Both the position numbers and the translations under genes were made by a program. A stretch of DNA of 64,000 bases from Felis catus (taxonomy: Eukaryota). The notes below the pieces were generated by a model that saw only the letters and a program-made list of their open reading frames with translations, ran no database searches and had not been told where the DNA came from. The stretch lies in assembly GCF_018350175.1 (NCBI RefSeq), contig NC_058383.1, positions 38,688,001 through 38,752,000 of the forward strand, in the 5' to 3' direction. This document shows, piece by piece, positions 24,745 through 35,731 of this stretch (its first letter is position 1; each line of letters begins with the position of its first letter).

Positions 24745-27700
24745 TCAGCATTTTCCAAGAGAACAGTGGCCTGGGAGGAGGCAGGGCCCGGTGAAGTCTG
24801 GACCCCTCCTCACCTCCCAGGCGACTTGAGCCCTCTCCCTCCTCTGGTGTCTAAGATCAGTCACTCAGCACAGACCTACGGGTGACCTGAGAGCCTGCCA
24901 TCCCTCCCAAGGGCGGGGACAGCCCCAGGGACAGCCCCAGGGCAGCCTGGAGGGGCCACAATGGTGGCGCCGGGTGAGTGGGGGACAGGGCCACTGTGAT
25001 GCCTCTCACCTCCGTAGCCATTTCCCAGCAGGCCACTGCCACCTCTCTTCACCTCAGGGCTGCCTAAGGCACAGACAAGCCAGGGCACCAGGTCACCGGA
25101 GGACTTCAAAGTCCTCCTGCCCTTCCCGGCTTCACCCCAGGCCCTGGGGTACTGCCACTCACCGAAGGGTCCAGGGCCCAGCTCTGGCCTCAGCTGTCCA
25201 TATGTGCCTGGGGGGAAGGACAGAAGGTGGGAGCACTGAGTCCCCAGTGGCTTTCACTTGGGGTCTGTCACTTCCCCTTCTTGTTCTAGCATCCAGGTTC
25301 ATGCTCAGGGTCCCTTGCCCCTCGCCTCTCCTCCAACCCCATCCGTTCCTGCCTACTCACCCTGGTCCTGTCCTGTTCCCTCTCTCCAGGGCTGTGGGTG
25401 GGCCTGGGCCCAGGGCGCAGCTCCCTACAGCCACCGGGACAACCCCACAATGCTTTTCCACATAGCCCATTACCTGGCTGGCTCCTGACCCCTGGATATG
25501 CGCCTCCAGCCCCATATCCAGGCTTCAGGGCAAGCACCCAGGGCTGGACGGAGAGCCAAGAAGAGCCCCTTAGGGTCCCAGCCTGACCTGCAGAAGGAGA
25601 GCTGCTGTGGGTACCTGTCCCCACCAGAGCAGGACATCCAGGGCCTCAGAAGCCCCCGCCCGGTTGGCGTGGTCCCCATGGCCCTTGTCAGGGTTCACCC
25701 CCAAAGCACTCATTTCCTACCATTTCCTTCAGGTCCCGGAGCTGCTGCCTTGGGGTAGACTGGCGCTTCTTCCCCGAACCCTGCAAGAGATCCAAGTGAT
25801 TCCTGCCCAGCCCCTGGATGCCCCTCCCCCCATCGCCTGCACTCTCCCCCAGACTCACCATTCCTAAAGCCATTGGCCCCAGGGAACTCTGGAGGAAGGA
25901 GAAGGTCAGAGACAGGAGTAGCCCTTGAGTCCAGTGCTCCCCACCCCACCCCAGCACCCCCAGGCACCTGGCTGCAGGTGGGCCTCAGGGAAGACCCCAG
26001 CTCCCAGACCATTCCCGTAGCCGAACCCTGCAAGACAGAAGTTGGAGAAAGACTGGGTGAGTGGTGGGGGTAGGGGCCCAGGGTGACCAGCGCATGGACA
26101 GACAGGAGGCAGCAGACACACAGACTGACTCGGAAGCAACCCAGAGAGGGCCTCACACATTCTCCCCACCCTCAGTCGGCTAACCCTGTGCCACTCCTGG
26201 TGTCCCCCTTCCAGAAGCTTCTCCTGACCTCCTTCTGGGCAGCTTCCCTTTCCACCTCAGGACTGTGCCTCAGTCTGCCACTCTGCCCTCACCGGAGACA
26301 GGGTGGCACCTGGTTCTGGCCATAATTACGGCCTAGTGCACAGTAAACGTGTGCCGGCTACATCGGGAAAGAGCCAGATGCGGCAACAGACAGGAGCAAG
26401 GAGGGCTTGCCGTAAGGAAAGTGGCAGCCTGCACCCAGGGGACCAGGCGCTCACCGACTTTCTGAGGCTTGAGGCCACCACCAAAGCCTGGGGGAGAGGA
26501 AATGGGGATAGAGATGGGGGGGGGTGGTCAGCCAAAGTCTCTTGACCCCACTCTTCTCGAGCTAGGGACAGGAGAGGCAGGAAAGGGAAGGGCCTTCTCA
26601 CCCAGTTCTGTTCCTGCTCCATAGCCGTTCGGGGGCTGGTATCCTGTGGGGAGAACAGAGATCAGCGGAGAGTACCCAGACTTTCCCTAACGCCCTGGGG
26701 GTCAAGGACGGACCTTATGGGTTCTCAAGAGGAGGAAGGGATCCTCCCTATCAACAGGAAATGGAATCAGAAGAAATGGGCTTAGACAGCAGCAAGAGAA
26801 ACTTAGGGTAAACTCTGGGAGGAACTTCCTTTCCCTAAGGAGCCTGAACCGCTGAGGCAGACTGGGGCACAAGGATGATGGAGTGACCCTGGTGTGGCAT
26901 GGGGACGGGGGGGGGGGGGGGCACAAGGATGATGGAGGAATGACAGACTCGCACCTGCTTTCTGAGGTTTCATTCCCCACTGGATGGCCGGAGTCGGGGC
27001 TAGGAAGAAAGTAGGAAGAAAGCCAAGCGACAGGAGTGAGCTTAGGGCAGGGAGGGTCAGGAGTGCTGCAGGCTGCCCTTGGTGCAAGGGCTGGGGGCAG
27101 GGCTGCCATACTGGGGGTCCCGTGGGGTCTCAGGGCCAGTTTAGGCTTTCCCTCAGGTGGCTCTCTGCGATAGCCTCAGGCTCAGCTGGAGAACGGGCAG
27201 GGGTTGTGGCAGCCCAGCTAGACCCAGCCCCTCCTGGGACCGGGTATCCCCTGCTGCCCCCCAGACCCCACTCCACACTGACCTGGGAACTTGCCATTCT
27301 GCACTGGGGGAGGGGGCTGAGATTTGGGGCCCCAGCCGCCCCCTTTGTCAGAAGGGACCCCCGAAGTGGGAGGCCTGGGGAGCAGCAGTGGAGGGACCCT
27401 CCCATTGCAGGGACCTAGATGGGGGGGGAGGGCAGTGAGCCCAAGTTGGTGCCTACCCCAGGCTGCTCTCCTGGCCTCAGCCTGGCCAAGCCACCAGCCC
27501 TCAGCGGCTTCCAGGACAGACACAGCTTGGGCGGGAAGTGGGGGGGGGGGGGTCGGGGCACTGGCTAGGCCAGAAGAAGCCCTGTTCCTGCAGTGCTAGG
27601 GGGGCAAGGTGACCCACATCTAACATGGCACCTGCTGTTGGCCCACCCAGCCCCTCTGCCTTCCAGCAACATCCCTCCCACCTCCCTCCTGGTGCACATC

Positions 27701-33700: not shown

Positions 33701-35731
33701 CTCCAAGGTCTAGGAGGGAGACAGAGAAAACCAACCCCCAGAGCCCACCAGTCTCACCTGGCTGGGCTCCCAGGCCATTCCCGTTCCCAAATCCTGGAGG
33801 GACAAATGGAAACAGGGGTGTGAGAAAGGTGGGGAGACAGAGCTGGGGCTGGGCAGGGCCCACCTAGCTTCTGAGGTTGAACATCCCCACTGAAGCCAGG
33901 GGAGACCCAGGGCACAGGTGAGGGACTCCGGATCCCCTTCCTCAGGGTCGCCCAGGACCCCTGCTCCCCCCTGCCGGTCATTCTGAGCAGGCCTATGGGA
34001 ACTCAGCTCCGGTCGGTCCATCCTAAAGAGGGTGGACAGGACCGCTGGTGCACAGGAAGGGGGCCTTGGAGCCCACTCCCCTCTTTCCACTCCCGCAGGC
34101 CCAGAGGACACGCAGTGAGCCGTGCTTGCTCGCCCCGGAGTGGGGCTCAGCGGGGGCAGCACAGGGAAGAAGCAGGGAGAGGAAAGACTGGGGGTGCCCA
34201 GGGCAGGTCCACGGGTGAGATGACACCAGAGCCGTCTTGGTGGATTCCGAGGGGGGAGGGGAACGTGTGCAGCAGGGAAAAGAGAGACCTACACCTGCCA
34301 CAAGGGATCGCTGGTTTGCTTCTCTACCTGGGGGTGGGAGTGGGTGGGGGAATGTGTATGGGGGGGGCGGGGAGGGGGTCAGCACTGTCCCCACATATTC
34401 TGAGGCAGCTGCTTCTCCCAACCCCCAAATCCCATTTGCCCATCTCTCACCTGCTCCCAGGCCACTGGGGGGGCCGTAGCCTGAGTGGAGGAAACAAGAA
34501 GTTGAGCCTGGGGGCCCGGAGGGGCCAAGGGCTCGGGTGCCTCACCCTCGTTCAGAGGACACAGCTGCTCCCACCCTGCCCACCCTCTCAGCCAGCTTTG
34601 CCTGATCTGTAGCCACTGGGGGTCCCTAAGCCTGTGGGTTGAGGAGAAGGAGGCGAACTTAGGAGGGGGCAAAGGTCTGAACCTGAATGCCGGCCCCCCG
34701 CTCGCAAGAGCGGAACCCCTCTCTGGGCCTCAGTTTCCCCTCTGGTCACAGGAGGGGCAAGGACAGAGCCGGGTGAGTAGCCAGCAGCAGGGTCATGGAG
34801 GGAGGGGGCAGATCCCTGCGCCTCCCACAGGGGTGTGTGGGCCTCTACCCTCCACTCGGACTCTGGAGTGTCTCTGGGATGCCTCCCTTCCCCGAAATCT
34901 CATCCTCCTGGCGCCGCACCTCCTAATCTTTCCCTCCTGCAGCTCAGGTGCATCTGGTCTCAGCAGGGACCCCCTTCTCCCACCCGTAAGACCCCACAGG
35001 TTCCTGGAGTGAAGACCCTTCTGTGACACTCTGGCCCCCCTCCCCCCGTCCCTGGGCCCCTTTGTCTTCTCCCCTCTGCCCTGCCTCCAGGCCTTTGCCC
35101 TGTCTTACTGCCAGGATGTGCTTCCCCTTCCCTGTCACAGCTTGCCCCCTTTGAACACCTAGTTCCAACCCCTCCTCTGGGATGTTCTCATGCCCCATCC
35201 CATTCCTGTTCCAAAGGTGTGGGGTGTCTTTGCTCCACACACTTGAGCTGACCATGGACGAGACTGTGTGCTACGAAGACAGGGAGGGACCCTGTGCTCT
35301 CTTGGGGCCCACATCAGGATCTTAGAACTACGTAGGGAACATCTGCGGCTCTCCCCCCAGAGGGCTCCCAGACCCCTGGGGGAGAGACCAGGCCCTCTTC
35401 CTTGACCCCAGTGCCAGGAGGGACTGCTTACCTTTCCCTAGGCCTGGAGACAATGGAGGTAGCCCTGGGGAGCAAGGAGGTGCTGACTCGGGGTGGGGAC
35501 CCCAGAGGTGGAGAGGGAGCAGGACCCAGGCATCCATCCCCTGCCCAGGACAGACTTCACACCCGGACCCCCCTCTCTCCGGAGCCCTAGCATTGGCCCA
35601 GGGCTGTACCTAGGCCCCCCAAACCCAACCTCAGCAACCTCAGCTGCCCGCCTTCCGCCCTCACCGCCTTGCAGGCTTTCAGAAGTCAGGCAGAGCAGGA
35701 AAAGCGCCACGGGGAAGGCCCAGGTGCCCAT
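24745..35731 (-). CDS. GREP1: Glycine-rich extracellular protein 1; secreted, ~37 coding exons, ~538 aa
   Basis: Exons with intact splice sites: 35731-35665 (signal peptide [22 protein letters not shown]), 35464-35432, 34480-34451, 33793-33758, 33422-33390, 33305-33246, 32947-32915, 32808-32755, 32324-32304, 32217-32185, 32100-32059, 31741-31682, 30968-30939, 30864-30832, 30744-30709, 30505-30476, 30392-30360, 29742-29707, 29553-29533, 29354-29325, 29232-29200, 28354-28301, 28148-28116, 28031-27996, 27912-27880 (GC donor), 27769-27734, 27414-27283, 26999-26955, 26643-26602, 26487-26455, 26027-25968, 25888-25859, 25780-25721, 25587-25474, 25207-25163, 25063-25010, 24770-24745 (GHCSLGKC*). Total 1617 nt, all internal exons 3n and phase 1. 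The position between CLDN9 and PKMYT1 matches human GREP1 (formerly LINC00514). The exact exon usage is a prediction. Confidence 0.85.
28450..29170 (+). mobile_element. MER21-like LTR element in a GREP1 intron
   Basis: Characteristic segments 'cccacaggttaagggctcagt', 'ctgacccaccggctagaaat', 'aatttgctagagccgctcacagaactc', 'ttattagaaaggctagaactcagga'. Confidence 0.7.
28868..28936. repeat. Compound (GTC)n(GCC)n trinucleotide microsatellite
   Basis: gtcgtcgtc...gttgtcgtc...gctgccgccgcc... Confidence 0.9.

Follow-up and report, generated by a model that had tools for sequence, protein, structure and literature searches.

GREP1 of Felis catus, a gene of symmetrical mini-exons whose architecture recalls that of tropoelastin

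GREP1 lies on the minus strand of the stretch of Felis catus DNA analysed here, a window of 64,000 nucleotides (nt) (contig NC_058383.1 of assembly GCF_018350175.1, positions 38,688,001 to 38,752,000), where it runs from an ATG at position 35731 of the window to a TGA stop codon at 24747-24745. The gene has 37 exons in total (a signal-peptide exon, 35 internal exons and a terminal coding exon). Exons that encode a pair of lysines alternate with Gly-rich spacer exons and the last exon encodes two cysteines, a layout that recalls tropoelastin, the product of the ELN gene. We consider the identity of the gene as GREP1, and the architecture described below, to be practically certain. All positions are those of the window, and features are on the minus strand unless stated otherwise.

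A script that searched for phase-1 segments bounded by AG and GT recovered the mini-exons, and the curated list was compared exon by exon with database proteins. In this comparison 33 internal exons, together with the first and the last exon, tile the database proteins contiguously, with zero mismatches; the main target was isoform X31 of the Felis catus GREP1 locus (P0063), and the exons skipped in X31 were placed on P0019. The sole gap in the P0063/P0019 tiling, of 15 residues, is accounted for by the exon at 26999-26955, while the exon at 34631-34602, which has a GC donor, is found in other felid isoforms; these two bring the internal total to 35. Compared with the other felid models, several of the exon peptides occur in the Felis catus protein alone. 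When all six frames of the window were surveyed, the G[FY]GNG (n = 7) and QNG[YF]G (n = 3) motifs all fell on the minus strand within GREP1, and K.QK was counted 11 times on the minus strand of GREP1 versus 7 times in the rest of the window, both strands included. This clustering is far beyond chance.

The coding part of exon 1 (35665-35731) comprises the ATG, a hydrophobic signal peptide of 22 residues and the first base of a Gly codon, followed by a phase-1 donor (G|gtgagg), so that intron 1 splits the Gly codon after its first base. A TTTAAA box is found upstream of exon 1 at 35771-35776, about 40 nt from the ATG. All internal exons are multiples of 3 in length (21-132 nt, mostly 30-60 nt) and are preceded by an AG acceptor; all but two, which use GC, are followed by a GT donor. 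The last base of every exon is G, and 30 of the 36 junction codons are Gly, the others being GCN, GTN or GAN. The original prediction of a signal peptide followed by 35 short phase-1 internal exons, all multiples of 3 nt with mostly Gly junctions, is thus borne out by the mismatch-free tiling and by the junction codons. Introns range from 74 to 951 nt (median 200), those leading from a Lys exon to the next spacer exon being 83-87 nt long. Since every exon is phase 1-1, any subset of exons can be spliced out; exon skipping is visible among the felid models, and annotation pipelines give up to 40 isoforms (X40) per species. Both exons with a GC donor (34602-34631, GCAAAG; 27880-27912, GCAAGT) occur in felid protein models. 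One intron, of 845 nt, contains a (GAC)n/(GCC)n microsatellite at about 28868-28940, beside an apparent interspersed repeat.

Three types of mini-exon recur. Type A (33 nt) encodes G-h-G-G-G-h-K-P-Q-K-P; type B (36-60 nt) encodes GFGNGNG..., with the tail GAFPGxGAQP present or absent; type C (30 nt) encodes GPxxQNGYGP. The junction from B to A reads ...AQPG followed by the A-exon sequence. The GAFPG spacer of the original prediction is thus present as a motif but not as a separate exon, because GAFPGxxAQP is the 3' half of longer spacer exons.

Reading from exon 1, the first internal exons are a phase 1-1 exon of 33 nt with one Lys (35432-35464), the 30-nt GC-donor exon at 34602-34631, which is used in some felid isoforms, and a Gly/Pro spacer of 30 nt (34451-34480). 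These are followed by a B-type spacer of 36 nt reading GFGNGNG...AQP (33758-33793), an A-type Lys-pair exon of 33 nt (33390-33422), a long B-type spacer of 60 nt ending in GAFPGxxAQP (33246-33305), and an exon of 108 nt (32915-33022) that joins a C-type and an A-type Lys-pair unit. In this exon the C-type unit lacks its donor and the former intron is read in frame into the next Lys exon; the fusion is present in the Felis catus model. The array continues with a B-type spacer of 54 nt (32755-32808), a C-type exon shortened to 21 nt (32304-32324), an A-type Lys-pair exon of 33 nt (32185-32217), and two B-type spacers, one of 42 nt (32059-32100) and a long one of 60 nt (31682-31741). Next come a C-type exon of 30 nt reading GPxxQNGYGP (30939-30968), an A-type exon of 33 nt with Ala in place of the first Lys (30832-30864), a B-type spacer of 36 nt (30709-30744), another C-type exon of 30 nt (30476-30505) and an A-type Lys-pair exon of 33 nt (30360-30392). 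A B-type spacer of 36 nt that is skipped in isoform X31 (29707-29742) precedes a diverged C-type exon of 30 nt (29325-29354) and an A-type Lys-pair exon of 33 nt (29200-29232).

The remaining part of the array comprises a B-like spacer of 36 nt (28319-28354), which an alternative donor at 28301 extends to 54 nt, a diverged A-type exon of 33 nt with one Lys remaining (28116-28148), a spacer of 36 nt (27996-28031), an A-type Lys-pair exon of 33 nt with the GC donor GCAAGT (27880-27912), and a B-type spacer of 36 nt (27734-27769). A Pro-rich exon of 132 nt (27283-27414) is alternatively spliced and carries a third Cys; an inner acceptor at 27303 would reduce it to 21 nt. It is followed by the 45-nt exon with a Lys pair at its end (26955-26999), a spacer of 42 nt (26602-26643), the last A-type Lys-pair exon (26455-26487, 33 nt), which ends in KPQKV and whose position is conserved across placentals, and a long B-type spacer of 60 nt (25968-26027). 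Altogether 8 live exons have the Lys pair and 2 have a single Lys, with 5 further copies dead, in keeping with the prediction of about 10 Lys-pair exons. After the module array the protein has a unique, conserved C-terminal part, encoded by unique exons of 30 nt (25859-25888), 60 nt (25721-25780) and 114 nt (25474-25587), a unique conserved exon of 45 nt reading YGQLRPE... (25163-25207), and a penultimate exon of 54 nt ending in GNGYG (25010-25063). The tiny last exon with a Cys pair that had been anticipated is 26 nt long (24745-24770) and encodes (G)HCSLGKC and the stop codon, with four residues between the two Cys. The 3' untranslated region (UTR) is about 150 nt long (24595-24744, the lower bound being estimated), with AATAAA at 24619-24614.

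The mini-exon array was amplified by tandem duplication. When nine A exons were compared with each other, synonymous differences (pS) amounted to 0.52 per site versus 0.17 for nonsynonymous ones (pN), and in the K-P-Q-K-P core pS was 0.62 versus a pN of 0.14; identity among the A-exon copies was 75% in the exons versus 52% in the aligned introns. Values of pN well below pS among old copies indicate that purifying selection acts on the K-P-Q-K-P peptide and that recent origin is not what keeps the copies alike. In spite of their age the paralogous A exons retain K-P-Q-K-P, with the second Lys as the best-kept position.

The array also gains and loses units. Seven module exons of the cat gene are dead, having lost AG or GT or having a length of 32 or 37 nt, and none is found in any felid model. 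The zone at 29835-31951, used in no felid model, contains the copies at 31951-31922 (no GT), 31844-31813 (32 nt), about 31563-31517 (donor CA), 30279-30232 (no GT), 30163-30128 (neither AG nor GT) and 29871-29835 (37 nt); the copy at 33896-33864 has no AG. One dead exon coincides with a run of seven G, where an assembly slip is also possible. One of the dead cat copies, a C-type exon, has live counterparts in bats, primates and the sloth.

The mature cat isoform contains 30% Gly, 14% Pro, 10% Ala, 4% Val, 5% Asn, 6% Gln, 4.4% Lys and 8% Phe+Tyr, with zero Asp, and has a mean Kyte-Doolittle hydropathy of -0.38. Twelve of its 18 Lys lie within KxxK, aromatic residues recur at intervals of about 10-11 residues, and X-Pro-Gly occurs at 24 sites. 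Searches of GREP1 against Pfam, the PDB and Atlas structures gave no match, as expected for a disordered protein, and the Atlas model has a predicted local distance difference test score (pLDDT) of 0.36 and a predicted template modelling score (pTM) of 0.15. GREP1 encodes a signal peptide and, after it, a chain without a predicted fold.

The original prediction had called the protein uncharacterised, and in this it was mistaken. Prensner et al. named GREP1 and reported that its secretion requires the signal sequence and that the protein is glycosylated, cleaved, Gly-rich and disordered; fibronectin and EMILIN2 co-purify with it. GREP1 is a published breast-cancer dependency, and the phenotype of its knock-out can be rescued with conditioned medium and with GDF15. 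In the mouse its expression is restricted to the inner annulus fibrosus, a load-bearing tissue of the disc that is linked to scoliosis genetics. The history given for the human locus does hold: it was long annotated as LINC00514, a long non-coding RNA (lncRNA) that HGNC renamed GREP1. Prensner et al. likened the composition of the protein to that of collagen and did not mention elastin. No paper tying mammalian GREP1 to elastin was found in the literature searched, and the elastin reading of the gene appears to be new.

Relatives of GREP1 were sought in two ways. A query derived from the window, a profile made from three stretches that read in frame through an A exon, an 85-nt intron and a B exon, retrieved mainly raw open reading frames (ORFs) of mammalian contigs and one semi-spliced model, P0005. 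Whole-protein searches used database proteins rather than the joined exons of the window: in word-indexed searches P0005 gave 144 matches and a marsupial protein 148, with human GREP1 among them, and the best 120 of each were listed. No GREP1 homologue outside therian mammals is present among these best 120 of 144 and best 120 of 148 matches, a weak negative, as genes made of mini-exons are easily missed by gene predictors. The homologues carry source names as different as GREP1, 'elastin-like', 'collagen alpha-1(III)-like', 'fibroin heavy chain-like', 'spidroin-2-like' and 'glycine-rich cell wall protein-like', a diversity of names that is characteristic of similarity in low-complexity sequence. 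Four Logan proteins of 251-441 amino acids, with the same exon chain as GREP1, are found on contigs of just 996-1588 nt; protein lengths of this order on contigs so short indicate that spliced GREP1 transcripts exist in public runs of other mammals.

Marsupial proteins alternate A and B in the same way and share the C-terminal block ...YGQLRPE...VK...LGNGY-G-x-C-P-P-G-K-C, and both the signal peptide and the C-terminus (...GNGY-G-x-C-P/S-x-G-K-C) are conserved among GREP1 models. In 117 A-type segments from 20 species the first Lys is kept in 88%, the Pro in 86%, the Gln in 85% and the second Lys in 95%, figures that lean towards the motif, as the segments were gathered with a motif filter. 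The Gln is replaced mostly by Pro (10% of segments, giving KPPKP), the lysines being retained. K-P-Q-K-[PAV] makes up 86 of the 135 KxxK motifs in 17 species and is kept from marsupials to placentals. Conservation of the Lys pairs and of the C-terminal Cys pair in orthologues, on which the original prediction depended, thus holds from marsupials to placentals, but for the Cys pair it does not hold in canids. Of 138 GREP1 models retrieved, 79 end in CxxxxC, while the canid models P0121, P0053, P0066, P0073 and P0034 (from dog, golden jackal, raccoon dog and arctic fox, and a 1420-nt canid-type transcript contig) end in ...GNGYGGP, without the Cys pair, in what looks like a lineage-specific loss.

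GREP1 is flanked by CLDN9 and a CLDN6-like gene on one side and by PAQR4 on the other. The two claudins lie 11-13 kb from GREP1, in agreement with the neighbourhood originally described. CLDN9 is a single exon at 13285-13938 that matches the solved claudin-9 along its whole length, with a score of 343 bits; the second claudin (11264-11929, plus strand) has claudin-9 as its nearest solved relative, then claudin-4 and claudin-3, and is presumably CLDN6. Both ORFs contain runs of N 140 nt long (11332-11471 and 13731-13870), the claudin domain being recognised downstream of each. On the other side, an exon with a HlyIII/PAQR domain at 50666-51223 is presumably PAQR4. Some pig models fuse PAQR4 with GREP1, and these are probably read-through mispredictions. 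A GC-rich CpG-island ORF of 338 codons (20632-21648) lies between CLDN9 and GREP1 and has no Pfam match. Human ELN, which we take to adjoin CLDN3/CLDN4, would likewise have a claudin pair beside it. Such a parallel would hint at an ancient duplication of the block, but is offset by the therian restriction of the homologues listed and by the single tropoelastin gene of amniotes (Keeley 2025). A third claudin pair, CLDN8/CLDN17, presumably lies in the cluster of high-Gly/Tyr keratin-associated proteins; if that placement holds, one may speculate that Gly-rich structural genes have travelled with claudin pairs more than once.

For the comparison with tropoelastin we took its defining features from Keeley 2025 and Ozsvar et al. 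2021, and the list of human ELN exons from a 2026 preprint. The two genes share a number of traits. In tropoelastin, as in GREP1, all exon-intron borders are phase 1:1, exon 1 encodes the signal peptide and a single Gly, exons with paired lysines alternate with spacer exons, and a replicated region arose from duplication of exon pairs, with introns of 60-100 nt. Both proteins are secreted and disordered and contain about 30% Gly, 12-14% Pro and 4-5% Lys, while Asp is nearly absent. A KP motif, G-V-K-P-x-K, is common to both, the GREP1 consensus being G-h-G-G-G-[VML]-K-P-Q-K-P-G, and the resemblance is in the motif only. The KP exons of ELN (4, 8, 10 and 12 are quoted) read ...QPGAGVKPGKVPG, ...GGKPLKPV and ...GAGVKPKAPG, near the GREP1 consensus in a comparison made by eye only. 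In both genes the last exon encodes a pair of Cys separated by four residues that include G-K, C-L-G-K-A-C in ELN and C-[PS]-x-G-K-C in GREP1.

These parallels weigh less than their number may suggest: if the founder exon was phase 1-1 all of its copies are phase 1-1 too, and phase-1 introns are common after signal peptides. Three of the coincidences with ELN are specific: the KP motif, the Cys loop at the C-terminus and the proximity of claudins. GREP1 also differs from tropoelastin in several ways. Its spacers are polar and aromatic (Gly/Asn/Gln/Phe/Tyr) and mildly hydrophilic, and do not have the V/A/L/I-hydrophobic hPGhGG/VPGVG style. There are no KA (poly-Ala) domains, with 0-1 AAK/KAA strings per GREP1 protein and no Ala tracts, and hence no obvious desmosine sites. 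There is no RKRK tail, the protein ending at the second Cys, and a third Cys is found in one alternative exon. GREP1 is about half the size of tropoelastin, and its listed homologues are therian only. A direct reading of the GREP1 3' UTR revealed no miR-29 seed match (TGGTGCT), whereas conserved miR-29/miR-181 sites are described in tropoelastin (Keeley 2025). No true elastin is present among the best 120 of 144 and best 120 of 148 search matches, and no link to ELN emerged from Pfam or the PDB. The resemblance between GREP1 and tropoelastin is one of architecture and most likely reflects analogy. The elastin-like reading proposed at the outset stands as far as gene architecture is concerned (phase 1-1 exons, KP motif and Cys-x4-Cys, set against the elastin literature). 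As ELN paralogy it is unsupported, no true elastin being found among the matches listed. The spacers, too, are not elastin-like.

Other systems provide further points of comparison. Resilin and other Gly-rich aromatic elastomers (abductin, FG-type hydrogels) are, like GREP1, built of disordered repeats rich in Gly, in which Tyr/Phe recur at regular distances and Asn/Gln are also present, and the C-type exon GPxxQNGYGP recalls the Tyr-bearing repeats of resilin. In a recent preprint a 'resilin neighbourhood' of composition is defined by G, Y, Q and N and an elastin one by P, A and V; judged by its sequence, GREP1 is nearer to the former. Resilin differs in being an arthropod protein with dityrosine crosslinks and without homology to GREP1, which has Lys-pair exons and much more Pro. 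Repeats that serve as transglutaminase (TG) substrates (the cementoin of trappin-2, SVP-1, involucrin/SPRR) resemble GREP1 in being short tandem units with both Gln and Lys beside Pro, and in the matrix proteins of this kind are attached to fibronectin or elastin; in GREP1, unlike these, the units are single exons set between long Gly-rich spacers, and there is no WAP or other folded domain. Collagens are, like GREP1, Gly/Pro-rich, secreted and encoded by many short exons, and the X-Pro-Gly sites of GREP1 are potential prolyl-hydroxylase sites. GREP1 differs from them in having no Gly-X-Y periodicity, and so no triple helix, no propeptide domains, and phase 1-1 exons, while the typical collagen exon is phase 0 and 54 nt long.

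These observations can be interpreted in terms of a matrix protein. A structural role of GREP1 in the matrix seems to us somewhat probable; that it works like a network protein of the tropoelastin/resilin type, with the Lys-pair exons as covalent ties, is an analogy to which we give an even chance. GREP1 would be a secreted, hydrated and flexible Gly/Pro chain with regularly spaced aromatic 'stickers', and the Lys-pair exons would be functional, selected elements that tie it covalently to itself or to the matrix (fibronectin, EMILIN). That the Lys-pair exons are sites of enzymatic crosslinking is tentative, being something that we infer from their sequence and rate slightly short of even, with lysyl oxidase (LOX) and TG about equally eligible. 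LOX, acting as it does at the KP domains of elastin, would agree with the KP-type context and with the lysines being the primary residues; TG, acting through the Gln between the lysines, would fit the conserved Gln of QxP and the partnership with fibronectin. Alternative splicing of the symmetrical exons may then tune the number and spacing of crosslinks, and the protein may serve as a network component in fibrocartilage and epithelial matrices. Phase separation, if any, would proceed via aromatic and cation-pi contacts and not by hydrophobic coacervation of the elastin type. Overall, the original observation is confirmed, and its interpretation is partly supported.

Several findings weigh against a crosslinked network. 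The VPG count of GREP1 is 0 and V/I/L occur at 0% of its xPG positions, versus more than 75% reported for ELN; hydrophilic spacers without V/I/L at xPG make coacervation of the elastin type doubtful. The decaying modules of the cat gene and the canid loss of the Cys pair indicate that neither the copy number nor the C-terminal loop is strictly needed, and the conservation of the A-type segments is to be read with the filter by which they were collected. The Gln stands in the context Q-K-P-G-[FY], a partial match to TG2, which prefers QxP-phi: QxP fits, with the hydrophobic residue at +4, not +3. Finally, Prensner et al. linked GREP1 to GDF15 and to the viability of cancer cells, an effect like that of a soluble factor.

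This last point leads to the main rival explanation, which we consider unlikely but more credible than those that follow it: GREP1 would be a soluble or matricellular disordered factor with a signalling role, for example through GDF15, and K-x-x-K would serve for non-covalent binding (to glycosaminoglycans, fibronectin or the cell surface) or for proteolytic processing. The protein was indeed recovered from conditioned medium in soluble and cleaved form, and the rescue of the knock-out by conditioned medium and GDF15 agrees with such a role; the wide variation of copy number and exon content across species and isoforms is also easier to accommodate with avidity-type binding than with a precise network. 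Over-expression in HEK293T cells, however, says little about the fate of the protein in tissue, and the strict retention of paired lysines at a constant distance, a Gly/Pro content like that of elastomers and the expression in a load-bearing fibrocartilage point instead to a role as a material.

Somewhat less likely still is that GREP1 is a 'cementoin-like' TG substrate, joined to itself and to fibronectin by isopeptide bonds made by TG2 or factor XIIIa. TG is known to act on short repeats that contain both Q and K, those of trappin-2 (GQDPVK), SVP-1 and involucrin being classical substrates, and GREP1 has a Gln between two lysines in 85% of its A-type segments, with KPQK[PAV] kept from marsupials to placentals and Q-K-P fitting the QxP part of the TG2 preference. 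A Gln content of 6% is high for an elastin-like protein, and fibronectin, which co-purifies with GREP1, is a classical TG partner. Against this, the residue at +3 is Gly and not hydrophobic, and GQDPVK motifs proved poor sites when mapped, so that prediction from motifs is weak. Moreover, the replacement of Gln, mostly by Pro to give KPPKP, while the Lys pair stays, indicates that the lysines are more constrained than the Gln, which counts against a TG substrate.

That GREP1 and ELN are true paralogues, GREP1 being an ohnologue retained next to a claudin pair and a second LOX-crosslinked elastomer of the elastin type, is in our opinion improbable. The architectural parallels, the match to G-V-K-P-x-K and the terminal Cys-x4-Cys with G-K in both proteins speak for it, as does the neighbourhood, since the claudins adjacent to GREP1 are closest, after claudin-9, to claudin-4 and claudin-3, the pair that flanks human ELN. 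Several GREP1 isoforms are also named 'elastin-like' by annotation pipelines, although the same pipelines gave names of the collagen, fibroin, spidroin and cell-wall-protein kind, as expected from low-complexity similarity. The independent coincidences are few, phase 1-1 being inherited by all copies of an exon, and GREP1 has no KA domains, VPG/hPGhGG style, RKRK tail or miR-29 site. No tropoelastin appears in the best 120 matches of either search, and the homologues listed are therian, while ELN is found in all jawed vertebrates. According to Keeley 2025 there is no second tropoelastin gene in any amniote, and LIMK1 is invariably syntenic with tropoelastin, about 12 kb downstream of it; no LIMK1-like neighbour of GREP1 was found, and the ORFs scanned, including by Pfam at 36.9-43.1 kb, showed neither a kinase nor a LIM domain, in a scan of the window that was not exhaustive. 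A broader form of the same idea, which we hold to be slightly more improbable, would derive GREP1 and ELN from one ancestral claudin-linked gene of phase-1 cassettes for a Lys-crosslinked matrix protein, duplicated in early vertebrates, with GREP1 as a second crosslinked elastomer of mammals that is specialised for fibrocartilage and tunable by splicing.

The view that the locus holds no functional coding gene at all, but chance ORFs, an lncRNA or a decaying pseudogene, to which the seven dead module exons of the cat and the long annotation of the human locus as an lncRNA might have lent colour, is already refuted by the 35 intact phase-1 exons, pN well below pS, conservation from marsupials to placentals, spliced transcript contigs, and published secretion and peptides.

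GREP1 is a gene already named, annotated and partly characterised, and the new part here is the reading of its anatomy. If the Lys-pair exons are crosslink sites, GREP1 would be a second modular, splicing-tunable, crosslinked and disordered network protein in mammals, and its cancer phenotype would have to be rethought as an effect of the matrix. A crosslinked GREP1 would also offer a natural comparison in which the contribution of an elastin-type gene architecture could be separated from that of hydrophobic sequence.

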